Source: Klebsormidium nitens (lineage: Eukaryota; Plantae; Klebsormidiophyceae). From it: 64,000 nucleotides of DNA. Location: the NCBI GenBank assembly GCA_000708835.1, contig DF236993.1, positions 230,307-294,306 on the forward strand. Direction: 5' to 3'. The position numbers and the translations under genes were made by a program. How positions within the stretch are numbered: position 1 is the stretch's first letter; each line of letters opens with the position of its first letter. The notes under the pieces are model-generated. The model was not told the origin of the DNA, ran no database searches, and saw nothing but the letters and a program-made list of their open reading frames with translations. This document shows positions 8,598 through 61,900 of this stretch, in pieces.

Positions 8598-11500
8598 CTA
8601 GGCCGCAGGCCAAGGCCGGTTTGCCACGTTTGCCTTCACCATCCCCTCCGCTTTCAAACTCTCCCCCTCCTCAATCTCCATCGGCGTCCGGTTGACGACG
8701 TACTCAATAAAGAAAACAGCAAGCGGGACGGCAATGAGCAGGCCCCAGACCCCGAGCGTGTGCTCCGCAAACACGAGCACCGCGAGCACCAGAAGTGGAT
8801 GCAGCTTCAAGTGGGCTGCGAAGAGTCGGAAGAGCCGTGTCAAACTTTGCGATGCCAATTGGCTGTCGATAAGACAGGAAACAACATTGTAAAAGGGCCG
8901 TTTGTCAACACACTTAATCGGTAATTTCATGTGAACGAACCGGGCATCCACCATGATAGGGAGGAATGGAAGCGAGCGGGAACGGATGGGGAGAGGGAGG
9001 CGACAAACAGATGGTAACAAGAACAAGAGCGGGTTTTTGTTGCAGAGAGTTATGATCTTCAAAAGCTCGGCTCGGCCCGAGTTTGAGAGAGGCATCCCTC
9101 GAAAACAGGCAGATGAGCGAACCGACTCGCATCCTGCCTCAAAAACAGAGCGAAACCGCGAATGTTCGAACGGCCACCGCTGGGGTTGCAAAAGTCAACG
9201 CTAAACTTCCTTCAACCAGTGAGAAAATTCATCAATCACCCGTTGCTCAGGCCGCTCAAACTTCAGTGCGGCCCGACATGACTGGACTCATGTGTAAAGA
9301 GCGGTGAGTAGTGGCCGCTTGAGAGTTTGTTGACCTGATTTCTTTCTCGACGGCTTCCCCGACGACGTTTACGCAGGCAGCCAGAATCCAGGTCGACTCT
9401 TATTGTCGCATGCGTTCACCAGAAATCGCATCTTGCTAGCGGCCCTAAAAACAGTTTGTTGCAACTAAAGGCGCGAAGCATGGTCAAGTTGGGTCATTTA
9501 CCTGAATAGATGACGGGGTTCAACACGTACGCTTCTATGGCATGCGTGACGACCACCATCGCAATCACTAGAAGCAGCTGAAAGGCACCGTACCTGCACA
9601 GACAAGGGAGATTGTGTCAGCCTTGCACATTCCGTGCCGAGTCCAAGGAAACATTACGAAGTAAAGCGAGGCTAGTCGAAGAGGTGATGAAGGATCACCC
9701 TGGCGCTACGGGCTCGTCAGATCAGTCCCAAGGACCACGGACTAGACTCTATACTTCAGTGGTGTATCCGTGACGCACAAACAAACGGCAACTCAAGTGC
9801 TCGTTATACGTGCGTACACAAGCAGAGAGCAAGGCTTTCGTGCACGCCTTTTTCTGCCACGGAAAATTTAGCGCCACGGAAACTCGTGCGCCTGAATCAT
9901 GCGGTCGCTGCAGGACGGCTGACAAGACCCTCTTTTACGTTTTGGACGCGAGGAAGATCTGTCTCTCAGTAACCACCACTTGCCCCAAGACTCCGACGAA
10001 ACTGGATATGACGCTGTTTGAGGACAGCATGTCCTTGACTCGAGGCTAAAAAGGCAACGAATCTACTTTGGAGCCGTTGAGGAAAAGCAGTGTGCCAGCG
10101 GTTCGCATCAACGATTTAACACATGACTCCAGACCGCCCACTCCGCGAGCGCTCGCGACTCCTTCTGCCAGGGCGACGAGGCCGATGAGGATGGTGGATA
10201 GAAGAACGCAATCAACGCCACCCTTCGTTTCGAACAATCCATTTGAATGCTGTTGAAACAAACCCTTCTGTGCTGATTTTGCACGAGCGGTCGACACCAC
10301 TCCAAACCGCCACTTTGCAAACGTTTTGCGACTTACTCTGCTAGTGCGACGAGGCCGATGGGAATGGTGGACAGGAAGACGCCGGCTACGGGAACAAAGG
10401 AGCAGATGAAGACTACGATGGAAAGGCCCAGAACTCCGGGGAGGCGCAAAAAGAGACAGCCCAGCCCGGTGAGTAGCGTATTGACCACCGCGATGGCGGA
10501 CTGCGCCTGGAGGGCCTTGCCGAACAGCCGGCCGAAGGTGGCCACCTGCGAGGGAAGCAAAGGCATGGGGATTCGTTTTAGAAACCGAAAACAGTCTGCT
10601 TTCAAGAGGTAATTGACACGATAGCCGCTTCCCAGCACTGGCAGGCTGGGTTGGATTCTGCGAAGCTGCCGAAGAAGATGGCTACTTGAGAAGGAAGATG
10701 AGACATCAGAACTTTCCAACCGAAATGATAACGGCCCGCTTCTTCACGGTGCTCACCAGTTGGGCCCTTCGAACTATGTGAAGGGAAAATGAAGGTAAAG
10801 AGAAACTTGTCGGCCACAATCGGAAGGAGGCAAGGCGCCGAGATTCTTTCCAGAAACTCAAGACGGGGGCTTCCATCAGGTTACTGCAGCGGATAGCCTT
10901 TTCAAGAAGCGACAGCGACGTAAGGAGACGGGAACTCTTTACTAATGCGCTGAATGTGAATACACGAACAACCAGCAGTGGGCCAGCTTTCCAGACGAAT
11001 GCAGCGAAAGAATTTGCCTGGAACCGACAGAAGCGTTTGAAAGCTTCTGTTCTTCTTTGCTAAGCCGCCCATCAGATAGGTCCGCATCTGCAAGGCTGAC
11101 GACGAACCTCCAAAGATCGGGATTAAGGAACGGAGAAAGCAGCAAACTGCTCTAAGTGGAGGTTAGTGGAACTTACGGCCGGTGCGATCTCCTCATACAC
11201 GGCGGAGAGTCGGGATTCGCGGAGCGATTTGGCGCCCCTTTGGAGGGTGGGGAGGTCCCAGACGATCATGAAGGAGAAGAGCAGGCTCACAGCGCACTGC
11301 ACACGATGACGTCAGAAAATGCTCTGTCACAGTTTGCGACCGAGTTTTGTTCGCAGGAGAACAAGGTCGCCGAAGGCTGAGGCACAACACAGGCTCAAAG
11401 GTAGAACGTGGTTTTGTGGCGGCCGATAAGTACGAGAGCTTACCTGCGGACCTCATACCAGTGGCAAGGCTTCAAGTGGTCACATGGATCGGAAGAAAAG

Positions 11501-14500: not shown

Positions 14501-14515
14501 CGTCTGTGCCGCCAT
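8598..14515 (-). CDS. AI-2E (UPF0118/PerM/TqsA) family transporter with N-terminal plastid transit-peptide-like extension, about 10 exons
   Basis: Spliced product contains MGTFILAFIGN...VPRVMHEA, CAVSLLFSFMIVWDLPTL (11175-11297), GKALQAQSAIAVVNTLLTGLG...SFVPVAGVFLSTIP, THAIEAYVLNPVIYS (about 9500-9594) and HLKLHPLLVLAVLVFAEHTLGVWGLLIAVPLAVF. First coding exon is Ser/Arg-rich. Confidence 0.88.
10150..10212 (-). repeat. Intronic copy of an AI-2E exon 3' end
   Basis: 31/35 identity in the core with 10338-10372, offset 173 bp. Confidence 0.85.
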
Positions 14516-15904: not shown

Positions 15905-18900
15905 ATGTCCGTGGTCACCGTACAACTAGGCCAATGCGGGAACCAGGTTGGGGGTGCACTCTTTGACGTGCTAGCAGGGGAGGCCCTCTCTGCAAGCCGG
16001 AAAGAAGAGCCCGAGGCAGAAACGTTTTTTCGGCGGGGCAAAGGGGGGACGCAATGGGTTGCTCGAGCAGTCCTGGTAGATATGGAACCCAAGGTGAGGT
16101 CTGGGATTTGAAGCTGGTTCATCTACTGAGCGGGTGGACTGTGATGGACGCAGAAGTTGCTTCTTAATATTGAGGATGAGGGTGGCTCATTTGAGGATAT
16201 TCCTGGCGAAAGCGGTGCCTGCCTCTATTCTCTACTCCTTGGACTCGATTTTGCCACTCAAGACTTTGTCTAGACGTCCTTCTTTCTCTGCAATCACAGA
16301 GGCGTCAAAGCATCTGTAATCAACACAGCAAAGTGATTTAGCTCTCCGCGCCATTTCCGTACTGTATATCTGGTTCCCTGTCAAGAGTTCATATTCTTCA
16401 GATGGTTGATCTGCAGGGGCAGCTCACTTTGAGGTAATGCACAAAGGACATGTCAACTCAAGGTGGGGCAACTCAACAGTTCTCTGCGACCTTCTTGGCC
16501 ACAAAAGTCAGAGAGACATTGCAGCAGGGTTTCAAATCACCACGTATCGAACTTGGGAAGCGCCTTGCAGCGCCTGACTTCATCACAACCAAACCTCCCA
16601 GGCTTTGGCTTCCACGGTTCGTTCGGCCCGCGCATCCAGCGGAGGCGTTTGGGGCTTCGACGAGGGACGGCTCTTCTCACGGGAGAGTGGCTCAGGCAAC
16701 AACTGGGCCCGGGGTTTTCACACTCACGGTCCAGCCTGTCGAGACGATATACTGAACCTGGTTAGGAAGGAGGTAAGCATACGCTTGACCTACGAGTATA
16801 CGGAGACTGGCGGATGCGGCAATCAAGCACCTTGCGTCTGATTGTGAGTATTCCTACAATTCTTTTCGGCTGGCACTCATTGAAGGTGCGCAATCAGCAA
16901 AGTGGTCTGATTATCCTGGTATGGTCTTGCGGGGGGCCGAAGCTATAATGTCCTTTTGTTGTTCTGATCGTCGAAGTTGTTGCCTCGCCGTGCCTCAGGT
17001 GGAAGAGTGCGATCGCTTCGGGGGCTTCCTTACGCTCCAGAGCGTTGCGGGAGGCACGGGCTCTGGGTTAGGTATGCTGTCTGCCAAAGTTCGGTACACC
17101 ACTTGATCACACTAACTGTTGGGTAGCTGTCGCTAGTCAAAGTTCCTCACGCGCAATCTTGTCCATCTCAGTTCTTTCCATTTTCGCAACCGGGTTCCTG
17201 AATATACCTGCTTTTTCTAGATGCTTCCGTTTGTCGTGGGCTCTCTTTCTTAGTCAACCTCGTTGCTCTTTATCCCTTGTCTTCGTCCCCTGCTAGCTTT
17301 CGGCGTCGACATTATGTTCCGGCTTTGAATCAGCACGCCTCCAAAAGCCCTTCCACATTCGGCAACAGCAAAATCAGCACGTCTCGCTAAGAGTTTGTCT
17401 TTGACTTTTGTAGGGGCATACGCGGCGGGTTGTCTACGAGACGAGTATCCAGCGAGCCCCCTGTTGGGCCACTGCGTGTGGCCGCACGAAAGCGGGGAGG
17501 TGCGTCAGGCGGATGTCTCCCAATCACTTTCACAACTGAACATGTCAAGATTGCCAAAGGCTTCGAGTAGGAAGAATTGTCCGTTAATATTTTATGTGCT
17601 TGGTTCATATGGTAAATATTGGTTCAAAAGGATTAATCATATCGAACCCGTCATGATTGCCAGAAGGCTTCTAGTAGGAAGAATTCTCCGCCAATCTTTT
17701 GTGTGCTCGGTTCGAAAGGACTATCTCACCGTAGACTCCTTTTTCGAAAGAAAAACTCTCGTTTGTCGTACAGTGACATTCCTCAAAATGTCCACGCCGG
17801 CCCTGAAAACCCTCTTGTCTATCAGTGGCTTTACAAACAGTCGCTTTCTAGCTGTCTCCGTGCACAGAAGCGACTCCGGATGCTTTCTTTCTGTTTCCAC
17901 AGGTGATCGTGCAGAGCTACAACGCGATGCTGACGCTGCCCAAGCTAGCTCAGGTAAGGCGCTTTCCACCAATCTCTTTCTACCTTCCCGAACGCTGGCC
18001 TTCTTTTCACTGGTTTGAGTCGTTCGGTAGGTAAAAGCTCTCACGAACTTTCGCAAAAGTCGTCTCGAAACTTCAAGGTTGCGTCCTTCTCTCTGTCAGC
18101 AACCCAGCCCAATTTGTGCCTGCGCACCCTTCTATTGAGTCTCCAGGTTGAAGCAGTTTACCAACTAATTTCTAAAGGCAAGTCGAGGAGTCACCTTCTG
18201 ATCCCTAAAAGACTGACGTTCTCTCCATCTTTGAGCTTAATAATGAAGACTTCGGTTTGCTACTCAGGCGGCTGACGGCGTAATCCTGGTGGAGAACGAG
18301 GCCCTCACCGCCACGTGTCGGCGGCTGCTCAACATCTCCCGGCCGTCGTACACTGACCTCAACTTAGTTGCCGGGCGCGCTCTCGCATGCGTCCTCCTCC
18401 CTGCGCAGTGGCGGTCCGAGGTACGGAAACCACGTGGCAAACGCTTCTCGTCAGGTTGTCGAGCTTGTTCGGGCATCAAAGAAGATAGTTGGCAGTATTG
18501 TCCTCTGTTCTCGGGGAGAACCACGGCCGTGACTTTGGTCGTCCACAAGCTTCTAAGGTCGAGCTTTGCGTTTGGTTGGGGCCGCCGCTTCTTTGCATTG
18601 GTGCGTACACCGAGTGCGTTCGCAACAGTAGAGGAAGAGCTTCTGGGAGTTTTTGACAGCCTACCAGAACCATAGCTGAGTTGGATTCTCAGATCTTACT
18701 TGCAACTTTCAGGTACTAGGCCAGACGCGTCCTCATGTCCGCTCAATCCTCGCGCCTTTTTTTCAAGACAAGTATGAGGCGTCGGCGATTCCCGCTTCCG
18801 CCCCCTGTCAGAACTTCGTCAGTATCGTGCTGACACGAATAAGTAACGTCGAAGTGAAAGCAAGAGACTGAAGAGCTCTTCTGAGGGAAGTCTCTGCATC

Positions 18901-21900
18901 TTCTCATCCTATTGCCAAGAAGCGTTACGGCCAGCCTCAGCCTTTCGCCTTCATCACTCAGGTCATTTCGGTGGGCGTGGGCAATTTCCACTGCGCCCTC
19001 TATAGGGCCTCGTCGCTGGTGTGCGCACAACCAAGCGATATCGGAAAAGAGGGGCAAAGAAACGAGAAACTCGTAGAATCGTTTTGCGCCTACTCCTCCT
19101 TTCACTTACACCCATCATGCCCGCTCTGATCCTTTTTCCCTCTCCACCCAGGCCGACTCGGTGGGCGTCGGCGGTGCCCGCTTCCGCCCCCTTTCGGACC
19201 TGGTGAGCGCAGTGTGCGCGCACCCCCACTACCCCCTGCTCAGCCTGCGCGCGCTGCCCCAGATCCCGCCCGCCTCAGTGGACTTCACCACGTTCACGTG
19301 GCCCAGCCTGGTCAGGCAACTGCGTCAGGTGCGTTTAATCGGAAAGCATTCTCCGGCCCCTTAACTCGCACCCAAGATGTTGTTTTCGTCGGACTTTTTG
19401 ATACTACTGTAACCCCAAAGTATGTTGTCGATTTCCGCAAGTTTCGCACCTAATGAATCGCAGACTGGCCGTGCAACAGTTGGGTGCGACTTTTAAGGTG
19501 CCCGAGTCGAGTCTTCGTGTTGCGCGATGAGGACATCTCTCGCTTGATGAGAACACGTCACTGCCTTATCCAGGATGACGCGGCCTGGCTCGAACCTTTG
19601 GCATGACAGACGTTTCGGTTCGCGGCCCTCCCTGTTAAGTTATCCTGCTGAAGTATCGCGTCTGTCTGCAAACTTGGATGGATAAGGCGCTTCGCGATCA
19701 TTGTCTGTTCCAGCAGCTCCTATTTCGAAGGGCCGTTTGCATCAAGCCGCTGAGAGTTTAGCGCCAGATTTGACGAATGGTTGCGCCGGAGCTTAAAAGA
19801 TGGAGGATCTTGGTAATCAGTAATCTTGGTAAGCGCGAGGAGGAGACGCAACCTATCTCAGAACATCACAGCTTGCGTGGAAGACCTCCGCTCTTCTGAG
19901 AGGCACAGCGTCGTAGGCAAGGAATCACAATGACGTCAACGACCATTGAGCTGACGTCATTGCTGCTGGCGCGCCCTGTACCTTCGCAGATGGCCTCCTC
20001 CGGAGCACCTCTTGAGAGTGCGGTTGACTGGGCCGCTGCCAGCGGGGCGCCCAGCTCTCCACCTCCCGCAGGTAAAGTGCACTCCTCAGCACGCACGGCG
20101 CTTGTCAAACTCCTTGAGAAGGTTCTTGTACAGGAAGTCGTTTCTGTGGGGGCCGTTCGGTGTGTTTATCTCGAGGGTTGCGGAATACGCCTGAGAGGGA
20201 CTCTGATTCGAACTCTTGGGAGGCTTTTTTCTGTGTCCAGACGATCCAAGCGAGTTTCATCTGCGCCGACCTTTTGCTCCGGCCGAACGACATTGTTTAT
20301 TTCAATCCAAGAGCCAGAAATTATCGCAAGCGAGTGAAATCTGTTAGGAGGTCCCGAATTGCGTCCCCTGTACATTTCGTTGTCCGTCAGGTTGCATCAG
20401 GTTTACTTTTTTGAAAGCTTTTTATTGATGGTCTCCAATCTTGAGCACTCCGGTTGTCAAAAGCATCTGGTAACATTAGACGTTTCTAACTTATCTACTT
20501 CGCTTTCTCCGGCCGCAGCCAGACAACGCAAGCAGACGCACCTGAAAGTTACTCAAATGAATATTGAGGCATGAAACGGTCGCTAACCCATTATTCCGTC
20601 ATTGGCAGGAACCTTTCGCAGCGTCAACAAGTCCGTAAGCAGCCTGCTGGTGCTGCGGGGCAAGGTGAGGCCGCCACGGCGAGGAAACTTCACCCCGAAA
20701 GTCCGTTCGGGGCCTCAAAATTTCGGACAGATCCTTTCTCGGACGGTCCCTGACGCTTGCACGGGAAGTTGTCAAGCAAGCCAGCTGGTGCGAGCTTGAC
20801 AGCTTCAGAGCAGCACCAACCTTTCTGCTTGCGTTAGGTATTTCAAGGGAGCGAACCCTGGCAAATGTCAAAGCAAGTGCGTTGCGGGATGACATGCCAG
20901 GCACCTGCGGAAACTACGGTCCAGACTTCTGCAGCAGGGTCCGGTCGCTTTCTTGGTGCAAGCGTTGATTCTGTCCCGCACTGTTGACACTTACTTTCCT
21001 GTCGCTGCCACCGGGTAGCAGATGAGATTTCGGAAGTGACTGACAAACACAGTGTTGTCGCCTCTAGACCACGACTTCCAAACCAGGTAGTTTGCGTAGA
21101 CGCCCGCTTCGAAGATTGACTTCGGGCAAATGCTAACGTATGGGCTTACCCTTCGCCGCTGCCATCCAAAAGGCGTGCCGTTGAAACAATGTAGACAGCC
21201 CAATCCGCCAGCCCGCGGGATACATCCACTCTCCTCCAGATTGTGATCCATTCGTAACCCACAGGCGTGATAGAACTGCATGCTGTTTTGCTGACCTGAG
21301 CAGCATGGTCGCCAGATCCTTACACATACTCTGGCACTATCTAGCAAACTTTAAGATGCCGTTTTGCTCTTTGGCAGGGTGCATCTGGGGTGGATGTCTC
21401 TTCCTTTGCGTCTCCGACTTTGTACCCATCATGGGCGGTGGACCCCCTTACCGTAATAAGTTCCCCGACTCAGTTTGGCAAGGTAAGCGGACATTTGCGA
21501 TTGTGTCTCGATGTATAGTTGCGGGCTTCACAGGAGTCGTGTCTTGAATCCTTATTTGCGGGCTTTACCGGATGTCTCAGGTCTGAATTTCTCTTGCACG
21601 TTTTACTGTGACCTGGTCTCAGAAACCGCACCATGTGCTTTTCTTGCGAGGTCTGCTTCCTGTTCATGCAGACTGCGTGAAAACAGCAGCTGATTGAAGG
21701 GAATTCTGCCGCCTATCGTTCCTGAGGAAGATGTTCACACCCCCTTTTGTGAGAACCTAAGGGGTCTTCGAAAAAGCCTGGTTACTTTAACAAGAGGTCC
21801 GAGTCTCGGGAGCTTGATTGTATAATAGTTACGCACCGATGAGTAGTGGATCCTGCGATGGAAATCTAACTGGTCAACACAGAAGAAAGGCTTCCTCACC

Positions 21901-30171: not shown

Positions 30172-32401
30172 TCATTCAGTTGCAAGTCCCTCATAACGTC
30201 CTCTTTTCACATGGGGATTTATAGGGGGTAGCACTGATAACTTACTTCGCCTCTCGGCCAGGATCGCGTCCCTCTGGCCCGCGCCCTTCTTCGCTGCCGC
30301 CAGCACCCGTTTCTCCACCCCGGGCACAGAGAACGGCCTGCTCTTGTAGCACCGCTTGTGAGCCGGCTGCCCTCCGCACGTTGAATCCTCTTCGGCAAGC
30401 AGGCTCCCTTCCAACGTCACACTCAAGGGCATAAGCGATCCGTCCGCGACTCCGTTCTCCGGCTGTTTCTTGAGGTCTTCCTTCTCAGGGCAGGGCTTGA
30501 CTGGTTTCTCCGGTCTACTTTCCGGGGTCTCGTTTACTCTAGCTGGGGCTTCGTTCTCTTTCTCGGCTTCCAATTCGTCATGTGCCACCAACTCGCTTCC
30601 AGCCCCCGCCCTCGGCGCCTCCTCCCCGATCCCTACTTTCTCACCACTCTCTTCGAGCCCCTCCTCTTGCACAGACTCTTCTCCTTCCACCACCTTCGCA
30701 GCCGGCAACCTTTCAGGAACCATCGTCTCCCCAATCTGCTCCGCATTCTCCTCCAGAGTAATCGCAACGTCACCTTGGGCCAATTGCTTGTCTAGATGTG
30801 CGCCAGCATGTGACTCGGCCAACTCCGCTGGGGCTTCTGACGTTGCTCCAGCACTTGTTGGCTGAGGCAGACTCTGCACCCAAGAGCAGGAGAACCATTG
30901 GTCAAGAAGTCTGCTTTAACCAGCGATTCTTGTGCTTCAGAAGTAGTGCAAGAGGCTGGATGGTCATCAGCTCTGCCGGCATGGAGCAGTGGGGCTCAGA
31001 AAGGAAGGGCAAGAAGCAGACGGATAATTGCGGTTGATGGAGATTCTTCGAACTGGTTTGAAATTGAGCGACAGAGAGTCACAGGGCATATACTTAAATT
31101 GATGCTGCTTCGTCCACCTGCTCTGATTGTGTTCAATCTGCGGAGTGCAATCTGCCTCTGAGAGCTAGAACAAGTAGCCAGACTGGGCACCTTTCAAGAC
31201 ACCTCATCTGCGACCACCTTATTAATAATCAATCTGCTTGGATCATTAAGCCTTGGCGCACCTGAATGAAGCCACCACCTCGTCTCTCCGCAAGCAACAT
31301 GCTGCGCTCCACCGTCCCTTTATCCGCTGCCCGCTTCAAACGCTCTTCTCTGCCCTTCTGCCCAATGTGCATCTTCTTGACGAGCCCCCGGTGAGACCCC
31401 ACGGCAGCCATAGCTCCGTTCCCTTCAGCCAGAAGAAGCTCCTGGGCTAGCCCCCCCAGACTGTCCTTCCCAGCAGCTCCAGAGGAGTCTTCAGCTGGAG
31501 CAAGCTCTTCGGCCGTTTCACTATCCTCTGACGCTGTTGGATCCACAGCGAGCATCGAGTCCTTCCCATCCTCGCCCTGAAGACCCTCGCCTACATCACT
31601 GCAGCTGACTTGCTCAGCCTCCGGTCTGACTTCTGCCAGAAATGGCTCTAGAGTATTACGCTGAACGGACCCAGGCTTTGGTTCCATTTCCTGGCTGCTA
31701 TCTACCGACTTGGTTATCACCTCATGCCCCTTCTGCACCAAGTCTCCATCTGCTACAGCATCCTTCCTGCCAATTGCAACCTCTGACTCTGAGCTGTTTG
31801 CAGTGTTTCCCTCCAGCCTGATGTCCGTGCGGGGTTTGGTTTCAGCAGGTGTCAAATTGCTTGGCCCATCTTTTTCAGCCACTGACTTTGCCTGCAATCG
31901 ATACGCAAAAAGTTCAAGCACCAAAGCGGTTTGAACATCATCAGAATGGATCCTTGAAATGCAGACGGCATGAGCTATCCAGCTCTTTCAAAACAACCAG
32001 GGGCGCTTGGAAAGATGGAACCAGAGCATTCAAAGTAAAGTGCTTTGATGCGGTTCAGCACCCAAAACCACTTACAGCCACAAGTAGGCCAGGATTTTTG
32101 CGCAGGTGAGATGAGGATTTCAGAGGTCTGTGATCATCTGCTGGGCCTGCGTTATTTTGCATATTCAATATTGCAACAGAAGCAGCGGAAAGGTTACGTC
32201 TGCCGGGCTCGTCCTTATCTCAACGGAATTTGCAGCTCAAGCTTCAGAAAGCCAGGTAGTCCCTCATCATTCATACCTTTGCAAGTTTGCTAAGGGCCTC
32301 TGCCATCTCCTTGTTGGTTGCATTTGCTCGTAGGCCAGCCTGCTTGCACAACAGCTGCAGCTTCCGTCGGGAAGGTCAGAGTACATCTGCTCGGAGTCCA
32401 T
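30172..32401 (-). CDS. Protein with SAP/HeH-like N-terminal motif, acidic linkers and two copies of a basic helical motif; apparent 1-nt frameshift in exon 1
   Basis: Exon 1 about 32401-32277 (MDSEQMYSDL / RRKLQLLCKQAGLRANATNKEMAEALSKLAK, donor AAG|GTATGA), exon 2 31891-31262 and exon 3 30873-30172 all join in phase 0. Confidence 0.6.
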
Positions 32402-39600: not shown

Positions 39601-42600
39601 CGCAGCCCAGGGGCCGGCAAAATAGGCACGATATTGAGATCTGTTATATGCTAGTCCGCATGTATGAATCAATTGTAAGTACGTTAAGAACCGTAAACAA
39701 GCTCTCGGGCCCCTGGATTGAAGTGCGTGAGAAGAGCAAGCTACATCAGAGACCGGTCAAAGCTAACCTCTCCCTTAACCCGGCTATGCCGGACGCCTAT
39801 GTAGAAGGGGTCCTGCAGAAGCGCCTGGTTGTTCGTTCCCACGTCGATCATGACTGGGAGACACTGTACCGAGAAAGAAAGATCATCAGATCACCCATGG
39901 GTAAAATGTGCGCATCTCGTTGTTCGGAAGTCTTCACCACTTGTCGAAGCAAACCGCTTTTCGGTCTTCCGTTTGCCGTACGTGTTTTCCTCTGCCCATC
40001 ATGATAGTGCTTGTGTTTCTAGCACACCGTCATAGCTTCGACGGCGAAACGGAAGAAGCACGGAGAGACAGTCTGCCTCGTCGAAACGGTTCTGGCTGCC
40101 CAGAGCCTCCTTGCCGCTAAAGCGTCATGATTTCGTTTCCAAATGTGCTGCGGCGCTCTAGCAGCTTGAGGGTAACTCCTCCTGGTCGATCCTCTATAAC
40201 CCGCTTCCGAGCTACTGAATGCTCTCGAAACGCCACGTCAACGCTGCTCGAAGCATCCTAGCAGCCCAAAACCTCGCTACTTCGCTTCGTGAACGGCACC
40301 ACTTCAACTCGGACTTTGAGAGATCACAGCTCTCGGACGGCAGAAGGGGCGCTTCCCTTGGTTGGATAACGAAAATGCTTCGAGCGAACGTCTAGGCGGG
40401 GTGCCAAACGCCTCACCTCGGAAGGATTGATGCCCCCACACGCAGTGTACAGAGAAAGCTTGCCCACGGGGATCCCCATGCCCTGCACAAGCCACGTGGC
40501 AAAATGAGACGCGTCGACGCAGGCGGTTCAAGAAAAAGCGATAACTTGCGTCCACAATTACGATATGCGCATCTGGCAGTTGGCCCAGAGCAAACGAAGG
40601 CAAGGGGGGAAGAGTAGAGGAAGAGATGAGACTGCTTTCTTGTACTCGCAACTCGAATCTTAACGGCAATTAAAGTCGACACGTCCACAAGCTTGGACGA
40701 CAAGGCTAGTGGCTGTAGAGAAGGTTGTTAGAGTGCTCACGTTTGCACCCAGGTCCCCAAGTCCCATGATCTGCTCCCCGTCAGTGACCACGATGAAACG
40801 CACCCGCTTCTCCGGCCAGTTCTTCAGGAGGGTCAACACGCGGCCCCTGCATGTACAAAGAACGGGATTACGACAAAGATGATTGTTTGAGATCGATCGT
40901 GTGTCAACGGTTTAAGTTACTGCTCAAACCCGTTCGATAGAATTATGTGCAGTTCATAACACTTCTTTGAGTGAGAACGCACATCGACGGATCTCGGATG
41001 GTTCTGACGACTTGAGGAGGAACAATGTCGATTCTCTGACGTCGAGCGAATGGTTGAAGTCCTTGTCGAGGGACTCTGAAAAGCTTCTGAGCACCTGTCA
41101 CAGTAACCAGATAGTGCACGACTTTGCGCATGCTGATTGTGGCCTCCCAGGCAGGGACAACGGTGTTTTGCGAAACGGCAGCATTTCACTCAAACAGTTT
41201 GTGCGCAAAGCCCTCCTCAATGTTCTTCAATATTTGATCCGCATAGGAGACCAAGCAACCACACAGAAAGCTATACGGGCAAGGCGTGAACACCACCAGC
41301 AATAGGCTTCAAATCCATATTCTCCCCGCTGTTGATCCTTACGTCAAAAGATCTCGTCGACCTGCAAATGGAACACGGACTGACTCGCATAGTCCGTAGC
41401 ATGCCAACGGACACTTTCGGACCCAAGGGTTGGCATTCGTGTTGGAACATTTACTTGTCGTTGTTGGTGATGAAGATGCCACGTGGTCGTCGGAAGAGCA
41501 GCCCGTAGCGCCGGCAGGCGAGGCCCACGGTGGGGCCGCTGATGATTGGCATCAGATCCTCAATGTAGTCGAGCAACACCCGGTAGAACAGCCGCTCATT
41601 GCGCTCCTGCGTAAAATGATGCAACATGTCTTCTGAAACGTCGATCTGAATTCGGAAATTTCTCCTGTTGCTAGTCATTCTGCTGAGTTCGTGTTGTTTG
41701 AGTTACAACAGCCGCTGACAGAGCCCCCGCAGAGAGTGACGCAACAACAATCTGGGACTCCGTTTACAGACTTAGAAGGAACGATAAGGGGCGACCTTGT
41801 TCTTCAATTTGTCTTGAAGTTGTTCTCTCTCAACAATGAGGACTGGCACGAGTTGGGCTTGTTCCCTAGTGAGCCTCTTTCCAGCGGAAGCATCTGCTGA
41901 ATGTTGAAGTCCTGCATTTATAGATCTGACATGTATCTTAAGTTCCGTGGACTTTAATACAAAGAGTAAACTTCTGTGACTTGATTGACACCTCCCAGCC
42001 ACAACAGTGAATCAGCTAAGGTATGTGCAAGCAGGTCTGCCCCCAGCAGAAATACAGGCCTTTGAGTAGACATGGGATGAACAAATTCTGGCCGCAAGCA
42101 CATAAGCAGTGGCTCCTTCAAATTCTTGTCTCAGCACTAGAGAACAAGTGATCTTTTGGAACTTACTTGGAGGGACATCAAGTGGCTGTACTTGTGTAGG
42201 TTCGAGGTGTACTCCTTCAAGTTCTCGAGGACTCTTTCAACCTGCAAGACCGGGCCGTCTGTCATATCCAAGTTACCGGGCACTTTCATCGACACCATGA
42301 TGTTCTCTATGATACATGACGACCTTTACGCTGGTGAACACAATTCAGTGAGGGCTCAACGATAGGGCGCATACTTTTCCTCGTTGAAAAGGGCCCTAGC
42401 CATATCACATGAGGAACCCTTTGGAGACATAGGGCAAAGTGCCTCGCATTCGGTACAGTTCACCTAGTAATGTTTCAGACCTGGTCAGATGCACTTTCTT
42501 CACGGGTGGCACCAGAATCCGGACATTGACCAAACCAGAAGTAACTGATTAGAACCAGACGATACAAAGGAAAGTACCTGCAAGTCTTGTGTCATGTATG

Positions 42601-43782: not shown

Positions 43783-46700
43783 ATGGCGGCCTCTTCCCTC
43801 CAGGCTCGCTTTGCTTGCAGCAGGGCTGCATTTGCGGCTCCGGGGTCTGCCAGACAAAGCAGCAGCCGCACATTCTGCGCACCTATCGCCGCTTATTCTG
43901 CGCCAGCATTGCAATGCAGGTTGCAGAAGACAGTTGCGGCAGGTTCCTATGCAGGACTTAGAAAGGCGGGGGTCCTCGACGCACAGGAGAAGCATGCCAG
44001 CCTCGCTCAGCAGGTGTGCCAAGATTCCTTCTAGTTTAATTCACTTGAAATACCACATTGGTGATTGCATTCTGGCAATGTGGCATTGGAGATCCGCATC
44101 TGAAAAGAAGGCATTAGAGAAAGACCTTTGCGGCACTCCCTGTTTTGAGGGGAATTAGCAACTGGCGCTTACCGCGTTGAATGGTCTAAGTCAAGAAAAG
44201 CCGATGTGGGATGCACATCAAGGTCTTCATGAACCTCTTATCACCGTACTTCAACTCTGTTTGCTCACCACTGCACACAAGGGCCGAGCTCTTATGTTGC
44301 CTTCGAAAGTTTATTCTGGTCCAAAAGGTCTCATCAGTAAACTTTGTGAGAGAGAAGCTGAAAGACAAAGCCAGAGCCGGGCAATTTCTTGGTAGAGATG
44401 AGAGACTCAATTTGCATTTTGAATTCAAAACTGCATACCTAGAAGGCGCCAATACTAGTGCCACCGCTTTGCACAGCATTCGCTGCATTGCATCAATGCC
44501 AAGGCCTACGTAGTGAGACCTGTATTGATACAGTCTGAATGGGTAGCTCAGAAAAGCAAAGCTGTACTTCTTTCCTCCTGCGGCACTCTATCATCGTCAG
44601 AAGCCACACTTGTCTAGATATGACAAAATGGGCCACCAAAACAACTACAAAACGTCTGCATTCAGCGACTTCATTTTGTTTTCGGCTTCTACTTGAATCC
44701 TACCGAACACGACTAGCTCCACCTCATCCAGGTCAGCAATGCGGCGCCGAGGGCGTCCTCCCGGCGCAGTGCCGGCGTGACCATGAGCGCCAGCGGCGAG
44801 CCAAAGAAGATTCTCATGATGGGAGGCACGCGCTTCATCGGCCTGTACCTCGCCAGGCTGCTCGTCAAAGCTGGCCACGAGGTAAGGTCACGCAGTTTCG
44901 CGGCTCCTGAATCTGAAAGGGATTGCTCTACAAAACTCACTGATGAAGTCCGTCCTGGAAACCCTTTAAGTGGAAGTGTTAAGCAGCATACTCTTTTGAA
45001 GAGTACCACCTTAAAGAATGTCTGGCTCTGGGGCTAGATTGCTGAATCAAACTGCTAGGTGACCGAATCCTCCTAAGCTGTGGGTAAAGTACGTTATAAA
45101 TCAATGCGGCACGAGACCAACAGATGATAAGTCATGGCACACTGTGACAGGCAGAACTTTCTGGTGGCTGCTCATGAACAAATACCTTTGCGACGCAGTT
45201 CATGCATGTCAAATGGGCATGTTTTCTTTACGCTCTGCTTACACGCACTGCCCTTGAAGGGAAAATATGCCACAAACCTGGGGTGCACCAGCGTCTTCAC
45301 TGCAGTGTAGCATCAGACACGAGGGTTCCACCGGTGATAAACGGAGCTGCTTTCTCATCTTTTTCATTGCCGTCGATGCAGGTGACGCTCTTCACCAGGG
45401 GGAAGACGGCTGTCACGTCACAGCTGCCCGGCGAATCTGACGCTGACTACAAAGAGTACGAGTCAAAGGTCGGCGCAGCCTGTGAACTACTTGTTTCTTA
45501 AGCAGAGCATGTCTTGAAATCCTTTCCGCTGAAATCACAGTTGGTTAATTTGGTCGTCAGGCTTCTGCATACAGGCCGGGATGTTTCGCATCTTACCAAC
45601 TCTTTGAGAGGTTCTAGAGGTCGCCATCTCGTCTCAAATCAAAACGCATTGGAAGGCCTTTCATTCGGGCTTTACAGGGGTTGTGTTAAACCTATATTGT
45701 GCACGGTTTGTCTAACCTTCAAACGTTCGCCATTGCCATTTCTGCTGCGTCTGTCATTCAGAGACAGACGAGAAATTTTGGATGTTTCATTTTGGAACTG
45801 ATCAGTGGAGAGCAAAAGGCTGAGCTCAGTCGATAACCTCCTTCGTCGCTGCACAAACCATCAAACTTTTGGTTGAGCTAGATGTTGAGATCAGACAGAC
45901 ACTCACGATCTGACAGTCGTGGGTCCTTGTTGACGTGAATCGACGGTTGTGATTTTCTTTTGTTGTGATCTGACGGTCATAAGCTGTCGACGTGCAGGTG
46001 AAGCACATCAAGGGCGACCGCTCCGACCCCGAACTCGTGAAGAGCCTGCTGGAAGGCAAGGGCTTCGAAGTCGTCTATGACATCAACGGTGAGTCCGCGC
46101 TCTGGCGTCTGCATCTTCGGACGCGAAACGCACCTAAATCTGGTAGAAATACATCTAAGTGACCGCCTGCACAGAATTCCTGAATACTGCTCAAAACCTG
46201 CTCGGACTTCCCACTCTGCTTCCTAATTTGCTTCGCAATCGCTTAACCCACAAACTGTGAGGCTCCAGACGCAGAGACGTCATTCCCGAGCTGGACCGGC
46301 TAAATCTTTCTGCTCGTCCACTGGGTCATACTAACTTCTCGCTTGACCCCCTCAGACCTTCTCAGCCTCAGCCACCAGGTTCCCGGTCTGCTTCTTAATT
46401 TGCTTCTTGATCTGCTTTTGTTTCTTGACCCGCGGGCCGTGAGATATCGGACGCCGAGCCGATTTTGGCGCCAATCTCCGACCTCGACCAGTACATCTTC
46501 TCCTCGTCCGCTTGCGTCTACTTTATACCTCTTAGTTGTCCCTTTCACACCCTCTTAATCACTCTTAACCCACTTCCTAATCTCTCTCTCGTTTGTTCTT
46601 CACAAGCCGCGAAGCTTCGGACGCGGAGCCCATTTTGGACGCCATCCCGGACCTCGACCAGTACATCTTTTGCTCTTCTGCGGACGTCTACCAGGTTCTC

Positions 46701-48529
46701 ATTCCAGGCGTGGTTCCCAGTCCGCTCCTCAAGGATTTACCAACAAGCTTTCTAACCTGCTTCTCAACTTCCAAACTCGCAGGCCGCGAGGCTTCCGACG
46801 CCGAGCCCATTTTGGACGCCATCCCCGAGCTGGACCAGTACATCTTCTGCTCGTCCGCGGGCGTGTACCTCAAGTCCGACCTGATGCCGCACTTCGAGTC
46901 CGACGCCGGCGACCCGAAGTCGCGCCACAAGGGCAAGCTCGACACGGAGTCGCTCCTCGAGAAGCGCGGCGTCAAGTGGACCAGCGTTCGTCCGGTTTAC
47001 ATCTACGGACCGCTGAACTACAACCCGGTGGAGGAGTGGTTCTTCCAGCGGCTCAAGGCGGGGCGGCCGATCCCAGTCCCCGGGTCGGGGATGCAAATCA
47101 CGCAGCTGGGGCACGTCAAGGTGAGGGCGAAGCTTTGGGGGTTCGAAACAGAAACCACAGAAACCAAATTTCTAGATGCTTTGCGAAATATCTATTCCAG
47201 CCTCCAAGAAAGCTCTGAGAAAGCTCGATTGATAGGGAGAAAGAGGTTTTAGATGTGACTTGTTCGGAATCTTGGAACCCCCTCGCTTTGCTGTAGAAGG
47301 CAGAGGAAAGTTTGAGTTGGGCTTTTGCTGAGGCTTCTGGATGGGCGCCGCTGCGCTGGAAAAAAAAGGACTTTTAATAGTTCCGCGAGCCTGGACGACC
47401 CTTAACAACGGCACAAGAGGGAGCCCAAGTGTCGTTAACTTTCCACTTGATAAGACAATAGTTTCTCTTGTAATACAAGTCTTTGCGCGCTGCACAGGAT
47501 TTGGCGGAGGCGTTCGTGGCGGTGCTGGGCAACCCGAAGGCGATCGGCCAGGTGTACAACATCTCGGGCGCCAAGTACGTCACCTTTGACGGCATCGCGC
47601 GCGCATGTGCCAAGGCGGGCGGCTTCCCGGAGCCCGAGATCGTGCACTTCAACGCCAAGGACTTCGACTTCGGGAAGAAGAAGCCGTTCCCCCTGCGCGA
47701 CCAGGTGAGTGGGCGTTGGTTTTATTGACCTTATCTTGCTTTTGGTTTGAATGGATCGCGGCCGGACATTTTTTGCCGTTCAAAGGAAGGTAATCTTTCT
47801 TGCTTCTTGACACGCACAAAAGATGAGAAGAGCTTTTTTGATAAAAGGTCGTCCACTTCAACGCCAAGGACTTTGACTTCGGAAAGAAGAAACCGTTCCC
47901 CCTGCGCGACCAGGTGAATGGGCCGTGGGGCTTTGTTACAAGGAAGCATTTGGTATGAACCGATTCTGAACCAAGGAAATCAGCGATCGAAGTGAAGGGG
48001 GTCAATTTTATGTGGCTCGTGCAGAGACGACAAGAACTCTTCAAAAGAAGCATCGTGCACTCGACGCCGAGGATATTCACTTGAAAAGAGGCCGTTCCCG
48101 CTTTGCAACCAGGCGCCCACACGATGAAAGAGTATACGACACAGGAACGAGGCTCGAAAGCTTAAGCTTATACTGCGAAACGACGACCCCCTAGACGAGA
48201 ACGCAACCTCCTGTACCAAAGTCACTTTCGTCACCCCTCGATAGGTTGGCGAATCTTTTTGCGTCACTCTCCCCAATACAGCGACTTCCCAAACGCAGTT
48301 TCGTTTCCTGCAAGAAGCTGCGCTGATATGTTTTGCCATATACTCGCAGCACTTTTTCACATCCATTGAGAAGGCTGAGGCTGACCTGGGGTGGACGCCC
48401 AAGTTCGACCTGGTCGGTGGGCTCAAGGACTCGTACGACCTTGATTTCGGCCGAGGTACTCAGCGGAAAGAAGCGGACTTCAGCACCGACGACATGATCC
48501 TGGAGAAGGTCGGCAAGAAGAAGCACTAA
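43783..48529 (+). CDS. CSP41B: Chloroplast stem-loop binding protein 41b (NAD-dependent epimerase/SDR fold)
   Basis: Transit-peptide exon from 43783 (MAASSLQARF...), then KKILMMGGTRFIGLYLARLLVKAGHEVTLFTRGK, QYIFCSSAGVYLKSD, SRHKGKLDTE, RPVYIYGPLNYNPVEEWFF, TQLGHVK, KPFPLRDQHFF, ADFSTDDMILEK. Confidence 0.95.
46254..46695 (+). repeat. Three degenerate tandem copies of the acceptor region and exon 5' end, in a CSP41b intron
   Basis: Copies begin at about 46254, 46436 and 46606; the real exon begins at 46783. Confidence 0.9.
47850..48115 (+). repeat. Two degenerate copies of an exon 3' end and donor, in a CSP41b intron
   Basis: Copies at 47850-47921 and about 48054-48113 match 47641-47712. Confidence 0.9.
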
Positions 48530-49287: not shown

Positions 49288-49578
49288 CCGTATAGTCCAA
49301 CGTGATGATTCCGAACGAATTTATTTCGAATTATTTTTTACAATCCGACCAGGAAAGTGGAATTATTTATGCTGATTCCGACCAAAATCCGAATGCCCTA
49401 TGCTCTCACTCAAAAGGGGAGTTTTTGGCTGCTTTTGGCAGTTTTACGGCTTCCGAGGACCATTTCAGGGTTCTTTTACCTTTCCGAATTTTTACTTTCC
49501 GAGTGGGAGATCCAAATTTCTGACTTTCCGAACGCAGATAATTATTTATTTATTCGGAATCGTCACGTTGGACTACGG
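49288..49578. mobile_element. About 290-bp MITE with TA target-site duplication (Tc1/mariner-pogo type ends)
   Basis: Left end TA|CCGTATAGTCCAACGTGATGATTCCGAA; right end reverse complement TA|CCGTAGTCCAACGTGACGATTCCGAA. AT-rich interior with repeated TCCGA motifs and no ORF. Confidence 0.8.
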
Positions 49579-54375: not shown

Positions 54376-54412
54376 GGCGACGCCCTCCGGTAATTAAAGT
54401 GAGGGCGTCGCC
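54376..54412. other. Perfect 12-bp inverted repeat with a 13-nt loop in a divergent intergenic region
   Basis: GGCGACGCCCTC ... GAGGGCGTCGCC. Confidence 0.8.
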
Positions 54413-54975
54413 GCGTTCCCGAACTTTCGTCTTGACACAGCCTGCCAACTGGGCACAGAAAAGGACGGTGGTGTCAAAGCCCCAGACTGACTGAAGGCAT
54501 ATTCTGTGAGAATGCAGCCGGCCTACGAGAACCATCTCAGCCTACTTTTCTAGTATTATTTTCAGTGGACGTCTGATTTTATAAGCACATTACCTAAAAG
54601 TCGGACGGAACACATGCAGGCACCGGAGATTTCCATACCGTACAAATAAAGTTTTACAGAATCTTCATACGTGAAAAAAAATCTGCTTGAGCATTTCATA
54701 GAAACTTCGCACAGGATTGGAGTCGGAGGAAGACGACGAATCAACAAGAGCGCGCCAAATCCTGGCACTGCCAGGGCGGCGCAGCGGCACTGCAGCCTCA
54801 GGGCCCCTCTGTCGATCCTGGGGAAAAGGTGGAGGCTACTGAGCCACGGTGCAATCCGCTGAGGTTCAGAGATAGAGCCAAAGAGAGGCAGGGCTTGCAA
54901 GTTTACGGCAGCATATAAGGCCGGTCGACCGCCAACCATCTTTAGGGTTCTACAGTGCATTCCCCTGCTGCAGAG

Positions 54976-57504: not shown

Positions 57505-58949
57505 CCAAGGCAAAAGAGGAAGCTTGCGGACTTGGATGACTACCAAAAGCTGTGTGGGTTGACACGTTATTCACGTCCTTAATCTTGGACAGCTTGTTTG
57601 TACACGAGAGAACATTCGTCATTGGGTCGTGCTCTGGCCCGATTGTGGAAGTCAGCTTGTCTAGAAGCGAGAAAGTATATAGAACAGGTATCAGGAATGC
57701 TAGGGCAGCGGGTTAATACTGCAGAGAATGCAGAACGCAGATCCTGCCCGAGGTTAATGCTCAGCAGACACCGCGAGCAGTGTACATAAACAGGTCGCCT
57801 GTATTTTTAACTAATCAGTCTGGTTTTTGTACGGAGCTTGTGCAGTTCAACCGAGGGGTTTGGACTCAATGATGGCCTGTCCAGCTACTCATGATCAGTT
57901 TGGCAAGCCGAGCTACTTGACATGCATGGGGCTACCGCATGCCACGCATACAAATGCACAACGTGTAATTGCAGCTTTGCAAACGCTCTTGATCGAGGAA
58001 AAGAGTTCGACGCGCGAAAAAGTGCACGGTTGCCCGCACGTATATACCGATCTGCAAATGAAGAGCAATTTGCATGTTATCAAACATGATGGATTGAACC
58101 GGTGCAGTATACTGAGCACAATCGAGTCCGAGAACTCTTTGTGCGCGGCGCAACTCGCAAGCTGACGTACGTATGTCACATTGATGCACGATAAACATGC
58201 CGGACGCGATCAGTGATTGTGACATATGTGACGCGGCCGTCGAAAGGCTGAAATTAAATGCGCGTACAAAGACTCGCGCGCTTTGCAAAGAAAGCTCTAT
58301 TATGAAATAAATTGTAAATCAGGCCGTTGAAGGAACTCAGTGTGCATGCGTACTGCATCAATGGAATGCATATGATCGATCGAACCTTCGAAAAAGCTAA
58401 TGCAATGATCACTGGATTCGCGTACGTGCACGACATTGAACAAATGTGAACATATTCATTCCAACATTTGTCACTGCTACCATGATGATCATGATAACGA
58501 GTGATATATCGCGTTCAAGTAACAATCCGCAACTGCATGCAGGTGAGCCGCGCACCGCACAGCTAAATTCTCTGAGCAATTGACTTTCATCAGCAACAGG
58601 CTTAGCGAACTTAGCCCATAACAAATGGACGAGTGCGATCCCACGCCATAGTCGTTGATGACGGTTGCCGTCATCCTTCGTGTGGGCCGCCACGTGGTAC
58701 ACCAATTCATTACCTAACGGAATTCGGCAGCTGAAAGGAGTTCCTCATCCTTAGCCCTCGTTATTGGTGGTTGCGCCTGAGTCACATCCCGTGGCGGCCT
58801 AAACAGAACATACTGTCCGGTCAAAGGCGCCCCTTTGCTCCACCAAAGTCCTTGAGCACTTTGCAGCAAGCCACTCCCTGCATGCACACCCAACCTCGAC
58901 AATTGACACCAGATCCTTTCTATCCAGGCTATCTGAAATCTCACAGCCG

Positions 58950-61900
58950 TCACTTTTCTTCACTCTTTCCACCTCCGACCGCGGCCTCCCCCGTCGAGCG
59001 CAGCTCTGCCCCCGCGTCCGTCAGCTTCTCTTCCAAGAACTTCTTCACCGACTCGAGCGCGCTGTACGTCGTCCGTTCATGCTCGTCCACCCCCGCGGAG
59101 AGCTCCAAGCAGCGGCAGTACTCTTTGTTCTTTCCCAAATTCGCCCAGCTGAATCCCGTCTTCTGCGCCTTTCGCACTGGCCGGCCCCCGCGCTCGTCCC
59201 GCTTACCCGCGCGGCCGCCGCCGCCGCCCCGGGCCATCATGCCGGCGATGCCACGTCCCCCGCTGACGTCAGCACGCGCCCCGCGAATCCCGTCGACGTC
59301 GCCGCGCGCCGTGCTGGCGTCAGCGCCGGAGCCGGACGGGCCCGCTGTGACGTCATCGTCGGCGGCTCGCCCAGCGAACTTCAAGAGCGTCTCCTTCATC
59401 GCAGGGTCCGTCTCCCGCTCGGCTGCCGCCATCAGACCGCCCTTGTCCGAAATCTCGAATACCTGTCCGGTCTCGTCCGAAGTAACGTCCGGCCCGCTTC
59501 CGCCGGCCGCCTCTTCCATGCTGACGTCATCGTGTCCCGAAATGACGTCCTCCTTTTCGCCGCCAACAATGTCCTTTTCCAGGCTGACGTCGTCCTTTTC
59601 CCTGCTGACGTCAATCGCCTCCTCCTCGAAGAACCCTAGCCCTGCGGCAGTGGCGCCGACGTCAGCAGCAGAGACCTCTCTCTCCTCCGAATCCTTCGGA
59701 CCGACGATCACAGCCTCGCTCAAACCTTCTGTCCTCTCTCCATCTGATCCCGTCCCCTCCATTCCACCACTTTGCTTCGCTTTTCCCGTCTTCTTTCCTG
59801 ACACTTCCTCCAAGACTTGGTCATATACGTTCATCGGCTCCGACTCCGCCTCTGGCTCCCGCTCCGTTTCCGTTTTCGTTTCCGTTTCCATTTCCGTGCC
59901 CGTCTCCGTGTGTATTTTCTGCCCCGTTCTGACACCGGTTCCCATTGCAGCCTTCGCTCCAGGTGTCCAAGCGGGTTGCATTTCCCCTTCCGTTTCCGAT
60001 TCCGGATCCTTGTCTTCCGCCGGAAGATACGCCTTCTCCATCAGCGTGTTAAGCGGTGCCTCGCTCTGTGCCCAGTTGACGCAGTGCCGGACGAAGAAGC
60101 GCTTCGAGGCGGACGAGAGAATGTCCGGGCCCCACGTGCCATGCACCGAATCGGTAAAGGCGATGCAGCGCAGGCGGGGCAATACCTCCTCCTCTGCGGA
60201 AGCGACGATAAGATCGTAAATCTCGTGAGAATATTGTCCGGATATTGGTTCAGGGACTCCGAATGAAGTTCAGAGGCAGCCTGGCCTTGAGGAGATGGAT
60301 GCCAGCAAAGGCGGGCCACCACTCTTTACACACTTAAACGTGCCAGAAGGGAAGTCTGGTCGACGTCCGAAAGGTGCGGTTTTGTCCTCTCCATAGGCGC
60401 CATCTTGACTCGCAAAAGAATCGTGGGAAAGACACATCAAAACCAGCTGTTGCAGCCAGACGATCGGCTCCAAGATTGGGAGCATCTCTTGCGCCCCCTG
60501 CGGCTCAAGGTAGCAATGTTCACTCCTGGCTCCCCTACGACTATAACTATGTGAGTTTCCGAGCACTCTTCTGAACTCTGATAAATGGACAACAAAGAAG
60601 CGCGCCAAACCCTCATCAAGAGAAACCAAAGCTCATATTAGTTGTCGAAGACCCACATACGAAGTAGTCATAGGCGCCCACTCCTCACCGCGTTCGCTGA
60701 GCAGCCGGCACGCGCACACCCCCCCGTACGAGTGCGCGACCATCGCCACGTGTTTCACCGGGAGTCCCGCAATCACTTGATCCCACGCTTGAACCACGTG
60801 CAGTTCCGCGTTCATTCTCGCGCCCCCAGAGAGCCGGAAATTGGGATTCAGAACGACGGTTGCGACTTCGCGCTGCGCCGCCCAAACTAGGAGTGGGATG
60901 ACGGAGCCCTGATGAAGGGAGTCGTTCATGCACAGCTTGCGGGCCCACTGGCCGGCCATCACAGCACCGCTGGAAAAGCACAGGACGTCGGAGTCTGATT
61001 TGAATGTCCGATTCTCCACTGAAATAGTCGTCAACTTCTGAACGAGAGTTTGATTTGGGCAGGTTTTGAATGTTGCACAGAAGAGTGTACCAAAACAAGC
61101 GGACTCAAGATTGAAAGAAAAGCAGACCTAATAAGGCGTTGAGAAAGCGCTGCACATGGGATTGGCGGGTCAGGAGACGTTTTCAAACTCGTAAGTGACC
61201 AGCTTGAGGCCCCCCGGATCGCCAATCACAGACCACTGGAAACGCACAGGAAGTCAGATTTGGATTGAGTATCTGAATTTGGCAAGCCCTCAATAAGGCA
61301 GAAGTGAGCATCACATAAGCAGATTGAAATTTGGGAAGCAAAGTGGAAGTGATAGACACTGCACACTTCAGGGCCCCACAATCCAACCGTCACGGCTCCA
61401 TTGAAGAAGCACAGGATGTCGAAGTCAGGGAGTACTGGAATTGGGCGGCTTTCAGTGTTACACGGAAGACTCTCCAGACAAGTTGGGCTCAGGTTTCAGA
61501 AGACAGCAAGACTAAATGATACGACAGGGCCTCAGTGAAGCACTCCAGTTGAGGGGTTTGGAGGCTGCCTCGAAGAGATTAGAGCTGGTTCTAAGTCTTG
61601 AAGAGGCTGTAATGGCAGGATGCTGAGACTCTACGAAACTTTCAAGGTTCGAGGCACTTGGAGTCAAAAGCATGATAAGAAGCTCCGAAGTGCTCAACAG
61701 TTTACATAAGAATGTGGGCAGCATGAAAGCAATGCAAGAGCAAGAAGATGCTTATACGAACAATCATATTGGGTCATCTCCAAAGCCAGAGACAGCTTTA
61801 TATCAGCGGCTTTAGGAGTGGCAGCTGCTGGGTTTTCTGGCTTAGGTGTTTCGGCAAGAATTGGGCATCAGACCCTGGACGGTAGGAACCCAATCGGAGG

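Follow-up and report, generated by a model that had tools for sequence, protein, structure and literature searches.

The 64,000-nt stretch of Klebsormidium nitens DNA analysed here (contig DF236993.1, positions 230,307 to 294,306; hereafter the window) raises the question of why introns of five of its genes, those for a CSP41b-type epimerase, malic enzyme, an AI-2E transporter, an Arb2-domain protein and a putative delta-tubulin, contain degenerate copies of the exon end that adjoins them. We call these copies echoes, and refer to the copy that is joined to the exon body as the live exon end. An earlier note on this DNA had described such copies in five genes and had attributed them to a recurrent duplication process with units near nucleosome or Okazaki-fragment length. 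We find that the arrays probably arose by serial tandem duplication across splice junctions, the extra copies being silenced by use of the original site and subject thereafter to sequence exchange and neutral decay.

Echo arrays at splice junctions

Comparison of the window with itself gave eight self-matches at E ≤ 1e-3, all of them direct and with partners at most 530 bp apart, and none that was inverted or distant; the best E-values reach 1e-32. At a permissive threshold (E ≤ 10), there were 18 local direct matches against 2 local inverted and 7 distant ones. The copies lie head to tail next to their source sequence, dispersed copies are absent within the window, and a chance origin of the repeats is excluded. 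Seven families span a splice junction, over five genes in 64 kb, and all the offsets listed in the earlier note were recovered, together with two families beyond its list (41584/41704, offset 120, and 17538/17644, offset 106). Tandem Repeats Finder (TRF) reported none of the echo arrays in the window, because the copies are too diverged and fall below its identity range. An exon map based on the G+C content of third codon positions (GC3) was dropped, as it gave too little discrimination.

In CSP41b, echoes occur at both kinds of junction. The acceptor-side array (46204-46869, plus strand, units of ~172, 170 and 177) leads through the RNA-verified intron 46089-46782 into the live exon 46783-47120 (RNA joint 46088/46783), and comprises the echoes c0 (46276-46324), with a stop and indels, c1 (46436-46521), whose acceptor is now CGG, and c2 (46606-46692), whose acceptor is now CAA. 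The donor-side array (47637-48113, plus strand, units of 209 and 204) begins at the live exon end 47639-47704 and extends into the RNA-verified intron 47705-48349 (RNA joint 47704/48350); its echo e1 (47848-47913) is an in-frame segment of 66 nt flanked by AG and GT, while e2 (48052-48112) has indels and a donor that is now GC. The intron parts of the upstream units (46208-46418 and 46737-46763) also hold a 12-nt pyrimidine-rich CTTCTTAATTTG-like motif that is repeated with slippage. Slippage of the CTTCTTAATTTG-like motif may speed the divergence of these intron parts and thereby inflate the apparent intron divergence of the CSP41b upstream units.

The malic-enzyme gene, on the minus strand, has two acceptor-side families. 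In the first (38537-38951, offsets 141 and 281), the RNA-verified live exon 38719-38537 is preceded by e1 (38860-38773), which retains its CAG acceptor and whose 141-nt unit reads as an open frame in phase, and by a third copy, e2 (38951-38910, offset 281); the echoes between 38773 and 38951 all lie within intron 38720-39262, for which the RNA joint 38719/39263 was found in 4 runs. The second (41454-41746, offset 120) is a weak match (E = 1.3) between the live exon 41605-41454 and an old echo (41746-41704) made up of 21 nt of intron and 22 nt of exon, which lies within intron 41606-42165 (RNA joint 41605/42166, minus strand). The youngest local duplication of the window also falls within the malic-enzyme span, at 35031-35090, where two 30-nt units stand in tandem with 100% identity.

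RNA contigs from runs of several studies were placed on the CSP41b and malic-enzyme stretches. In four runs, the four echo-bearing introns of these two genes are each spliced as a single intron, and the mature mRNAs of both genes are free of echo sequence, in agreement with the earlier note, which had placed the copies upstream of acceptors or downstream of donors, so that the original reading frame survives. Echo sequence does occur in RNA, in low-depth contigs that run continuously through the intron at ~1-3% of exon depth, and the RNA level of echo-free introns of the same gene is equal to that of the echo-bearing ones. No splice junction into any echo was present in the RNA contigs of 5 runs, such contigs being known to drop rare isoforms. 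The low-depth intron contigs traverse the arrays with zero differences, and in Logan assemblies of four DNA runs, which may be from the source sample, 98-100% of the words of the 46150-46790 array are present. Since difference-free RNA contigs and the words of DNA runs cover the arrays, they are not assembly artefacts.

The units hold the exon end, the splice site and flanking intron, and the alignments cross the junction, which bears out the earlier description of the copies as tandem duplicates of all three. The intron parts are 65-73% identical (z ~5-6) on the donor side of CSP41b, in malic enzyme and in AI-2E. We also compared the ends (up to 100 nt) of 16 RNA-verified exons with their own adjacent introns and with all other introns of the two genes. 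On this small scale the result was clearly positive: 3/28 adjacent pairs of exon end and intron scored 58-65, against a mean of 8.9 and a maximum of 15 in the non-adjacent controls (n = 364). Whole-exon copies with both splice sites were not encountered, the copies comprising 22-100 nt of exons of 152-338 nt, and CSP41b e1 is alone in having AG as well as GT. Many upstream echoes (malic e1 and the four echoes, e1-e4, of the related taxon L001 described below) retain their pyrimidine tract and AG intact, and the splice site is lost in c1, c2 and the AI-2E echo; this mixture of kept and lost sites fits a gradual inactivation.

In the remaining three genes, exon limits were derived from open reading frames and splice consensus; Pfam supports the identities of AI-2E (AI-2E_transport) and Arb2, as well as those of the CSP41b-type epimerase and malic enzyme. 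The donor-side array of the AI-2E transporter gene (10121-10382, minus strand, unit 173) consists of the end (10382-10337) of the live exon 10545-10337, with the donor GTAAGT at 10336, and an echo of this exon end at 10209-10164, whose donor has been lost (AGGAGT); homologous intron follows both the echo and the live copy. The acceptor-side array of the putative delta-tubulin gene (18778-19328, plus strand, offsets 190 and 386), so named in the earlier note, precedes the live exon 19152-19328, for which Pfam gave no match. Its echoes copy the 5′ part of the exon; the one at 18965-19032 (offset 190) has indels and a stop further on, and a further one lies at 18778-18815 (offset 386). In the Arb2-domain gene (acceptor-side array 60922-61426, minus strand, offsets 267/164), the live exon starts at 61018, and the two old echoes (61276-61189 and 61426-61360) are frameshifted, with differences spread across all codon positions. 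Upstream of this Arb2-like gene, the region 58735-60269 contains a long open frame on each strand (494 and 439 codons) and, especially at 59510-59612 and 59845-60014, repeats of 6, 12, 21 and 63 nt of the TCCGTT type; it may be a low-complexity coding region.

Turnover of arrays in related taxa

Genomic contigs of three related taxa (L001, L002/L007 and L003-5, with L002 and L007 being one metagenome) were reached via exon-sized open reading frames. Relative to the CSP41b exons of the window, L001 is ~92% identical overall (up to 94% in single BLAST hits), with 17.6% divergence at third positions, and L002/L007 are ~85% identical overall, with ~35% divergence at third positions; L003-5 are ~85% identical to the window. 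The significant self-matches in these contigs are all local and direct (11/11 in L001, 11/11 in L002/L007 and 8/8 in L003), and many lie at exon junctions. The recurrence claimed by the earlier note is thus found in five genes of the window and also in three relatives, in which the arrays are of the same kind with other junctions and copy numbers; the basis for any genome-wide scale is this window and ~45 kb of relatives.

The intron before exon 46783 measures 694 nt in the window, with three echoes, and ~1220 nt in L001, with four, and contains one old echo in L002 and L003. The next exon has its 5′ junction echoed twice in L001 but not in the window, and the malic echoes are absent from L007. 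That arrays of the same kind occur at other junctions and in other copy numbers implies that turnover is fast.

The same intron provides evidence that the unit joined to the exon body has changed. The 90 nt upstream of c1 in the window are orthologous to the 90 nt upstream of the live exon of L001 (score 41, background ~10), and nothing upstream of the L001 live exon corresponds to the sequence that precedes the live exon 46783 of the window. The L001 live exon shares two derived third-position states with c1 and c2 (46832 and 46865), at which the window live exon has the states of L002 and L003. Hence, the unit that is joined to the exon body differs between the window and L001. Since the window units after c1 have intron parts unlike that of the c1 unit (scores 8-13), a simple gain after the split is unlikely, and the simplest reading of these alignments would be the loss of units in the L001 lineage by a deletion between exon parts.

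Conservation within units is unequal. The exon part of CSP41b e1 is identical to the live exon at 61/66 positions, and its intron flank matches that of the live unit at 74/136 (54%); this e1 flank is equidistant from the intron of the window and the orthologous intron of L001 (54/55/51%). Malic e1 and the upstream echoes of L001 are mosaics, in which the part proximal to the junction is well preserved and the distal part strongly diverged. This inequality suggests that sequence may have been exchanged between units.

Two further observations concern the same locus. The third positions of the first 29 codons of exon 46783 are almost invariant in the four taxa, against a gene-wide divergence of 18-35%, which suggests a strong codon or splicing constraint near its acceptor. 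Directly upstream of the CSP41b locus of L002, the segments 3130-3263 and 5561-5634 match 30239-30372 and 32275-32348 of the window. As the CSP41b locus lies at ~44.7 kb in the window and these segments match its ~30-32 kb region, gene order in L002 differs from that of the window, the malic-enzyme region being elsewhere (L007).

Origin of the arrays and alternative explanations

We propose that short tandem duplications, with units of ~100-400 bp, would occur repeatedly within genes, for which replication slippage, unequal sister exchange and the repair of nearby nicks are candidate mechanisms. In a unit that spans a junction, the copy joined to the exon body stays in use and the other is intronic and removed with the intron; each duplication lengthens the intron by one unit and leaves the protein as it was. 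Exon definition is a candidate for the choice of the exon-body unit, as an echo would have no downstream donor, or no upstream acceptor, at exon distance. Repetition of the event would produce arrays of up to 4-5 units, in which gene conversion or unequal exchange would keep transferring sequence between the exon parts and the live exon, itself under constraint. Such exchange, which we infer, could explain why exon parts are far more similar than intron parts and why identity is mosaic. A deletion between two exon parts would attach a different unit to the exon body. Once exchange ceased to renew a copy, it would lose its splice sites and decay neutrally.

Neutral decay has to be reconciled with the codon positions at which the copies differ. 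In the best-preserved pairs (seven pairs), 45 differences fall at third, 11 at first and 8 at second codon positions, and most changes lie on the echo branch when polarised with the live exons of four taxa; such a distribution is not expected of a purely neutral copy that mutates uniformly. However, G/C sites in echoes change 2-4 times more than A/T sites, and third positions are almost all G/C. When all twelve CSP41b echoes were pooled and G/C sites alone considered, third positions differed at 19.6% and the others at 16.4% (odds ratio 1.25, P = 0.42). The apparent synonymous bias mainly reflects GC-rich third positions combined with a faster change of G/C in intronic copies, and old echoes have stops, frameshifts and differences that are even over the codon positions. 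In summary, the codon-position pattern is mostly compositional, with a modest unexplained residue in a small sample. Decay of CpG sites is not supported as the cause of the third-position bias, first- and second-position CpG sites being the least changed.

Several points weigh against the proposed course of events. Among G/C sites of the better-preserved echoes, branch-specific changes affect 21% of third positions and 10% of others (P = 0.015), an excess that would not be expected from gene conversion. Most of it is made up of C-G transversions, several of which are common to different echoes and so are not independent, and only 1/50 of the first- and second-position CpG sites in these echoes has changed. 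Gene conversion itself is deduced from patterns of identity rather than observed, and c2, though well preserved, does not carry the derived states of the live exon of its own genome. The evidence for switching comes from one array, that upstream of exon 46783, the RNA-verified exon models cover two genes, and the RNA contigs are compatible with rare isoforms that use echo splice sites.

The residue would be accounted for if the well-preserved echoes were under purifying selection at the protein level, as rare or condition-specific isoforms or as spare exon ends. Such selection would agree with the third-position share of the changes in c2, CSP41b e1 and L001 e1 (12/15) and the P value of 0.015 at G/C sites, with the acceptor and open 141-nt frame of malic e1 and the in-frame 66 nt of CSP41b e1 with its AG and GT, and with the finding that, in a relative, one unit of echo type serves as the live exon end. 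We nevertheless consider it improbable, as the contigs of 5 runs hold no echo junction and echo depth is that of ordinary intron retention, the echoes are partial exons of which c1, c2 and the AI-2E echo are without splice sites, and their inclusion would duplicate 22-59 residues inside folded domains. Moreover, the pooled bias vanishes after the control for composition, and the old echoes have stops and frameshifts. Selection acting through rare recombination would, by our reasoning, need an unrealistically large population diversity. Indirect selection on echoes, via conversion or contraction into the live exon, was likewise rejected on population-genetic grounds, since the same events erase third-position differences unless population diversity is near 1. 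In a stronger form, which we also think unlikely to hold, the well-preserved echoes would keep their coding capacity by direct selection and repeatedly replace live exon ends via unit deletion; introns would then store a constantly renewed stock of alternative ends, and in this lineage the ends of exons would evolve by swaps among tandem copies.

Two other relations between echoes and splicing were considered for CSP41b. That the echo boundary marks an ancient intron site, as in decayed mutually exclusive exons, was rejected because the land-plant intron lies ~10 residues further on. As for replacement splicing, in which an echo donor would be joined to an internal acceptor, an in-frame option exists in c2 only; we treat it as a coincidence because the acceptor of c2 itself is shifted by 1 nt.

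The earlier note had tied the units to nucleosome or Okazaki-fragment length, and several families do cluster at 164-209 bp. Independent family spacings in the window and its relatives nonetheless amount to 106, 120, 127, 138, 141, ~165, 167, 172, 173, 190, 209, 267, 389 and 492 bp (median ~165, n ~14), a broad distribution with no sharp peak, from a sample too small for a test of this idea. The equal spacing within an array is inherited and so is not independent evidence, and the lower end of the range reflects what can be detected and how short a unit can be while still including a splice signal. The size claim is not supported, and it is doubtful that units of chromatin or replication set the duplications.

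Nor is a preferential targeting of junctions supported, since there are also intron-only duplications. In the window, a tandem duplication that appears to be intron-only, at 17538-17713 (plus strand, 106-nt unit, 84% identity; placed by open reading frame and splice consensus), begins ~40 nt downstream of the predicted donor 17499/17500. Among the relatives, intron-only repeats occur at L002 13213-13522 and in a malic-enzyme intron of L007 (3003-3544), the latter a minisatellite-like, degenerate tandem array of ~540 nt with periods of ~43/86 nt, 62-67% identity and no exon part. These imply that the underlying process is local tandem duplication in general; junction-spanning copies stay detectable for longer because one partner is constrained.

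A different possibility is that the echoes were born diverged, as fragments of foreign orthologs acquired by hybridisation or DNA uptake and integrated with the conserved exon as homology anchor. Echo units do resemble the live unit of another taxon, including its intron part (c1 against the L001 live unit), L001-type states occur in window echoes and window-type states in L001 echoes, and the C-G changes of synonymous type are typical of live GC3-rich exons. We regard this origin as very unlikely, however: the echo-specific states of c2 and e1 are found in 0/4 live exons, the reciprocal pattern is explained more simply by an ancestral array with loss of units, and graded, equally spaced arrays are not predicted. 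There are also no malic transcript contigs at 90-99% identity, on which ground a homeolog or second haplotype was rejected as the source.

Finally, no support was found for an assembly artefact, a chance match or an introner-like mobile element, which can be dismissed almost entirely given the difference-free RNA contigs of different studies, the array words in DNA-run assemblies, the similar arrays in relatives, E-values down to 1e-32 and the absence from the window of near-identical copies that are dispersed and bear terminal repeats or target duplications, the echo content being that of the neighbouring exon.

A side observation concerns the RNA contigs of two runs, whose ends at 49293 and 49326 carry loose sequence that does not match; 49293-49320 also forms an inverted repeat of 28 nt (89%) with 49575-49548. 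These contig ends may represent a rearrangement, trans-splicing or a contig chimera.

Relation to known systems and significance

Tandem arrays undergo concerted evolution by unequal exchange or gene conversion. The echo arrays are similar in that units appear to exchange sequence and that copy number and the terminal unit change between relatives; they differ in that one unit, that joined to the exon body, is selected, and homogenisation appears confined to the exon part. Tandem exon duplication is also said to give rise to mutually exclusive exons, and unannotated decayed tandem exon copies are known in animals. Both resemble the echoes in that the intron next to an exon contains tandem copies of its sequence, whereas the echoes are partial exon copies, have no alternative use in the RNA contigs and in many cases are without one or both splice sites. 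In the classical model of intron gain, the duplication of an exonic AGGT segment reportedly creates a new intron. In the window, by contrast, the duplication affects a junction that is already present and lengthens its intron, and the process is serial and dense (7 families in 64 kb), with turnover between close relatives.

According to the account in PMC4974935, it is established that genes undergo silent internal tandem duplication and that this plays a part in intron gain (Rogers 1989, Gao & Lynch 2009, cited in PMC4974935). The echoes share with such internal gene duplication a short within-gene tandem duplication that is silent by splicing and whose source is the neighbouring sequence. 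The potato RdRp gene, as described in that article, is a case of a single duplication in one gene, in which the upstream copy of the exon remained part of an exon and an additional intron arose (PMC4974935). The anatomy of the unit is that of the acceptor-side echoes, with inheritance of the branch site, the pyrimidine tract and the 3′ splice site; unlike the potato case as presented there, the upstream copy is wholly intronic here and no change in intron number was seen. Our literature searches, in which Gao & Lynch 2009 was known via PMC4974935, returned no description of such density, serial stacking, rapid turnover or change of the live unit. The mechanism is known, and the density, serial build-up and copy switching appear to be undescribed.

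For gene prediction in this group, the intact-looking splice sites and open frames in the copies will be misleading. Well-dated cases in which tandem duplication has shaped introns are few and mostly concern single genes; in the DNA analysed here the process looks frequent, serial and ongoing among close relatives, so that many independent events would be available for measuring its rate and decay, the size of units and the choice of splice site. That an intronic copy in one taxon corresponds to the live exon end in another suggests, in addition, that exon ends are replaceable through such arrays.

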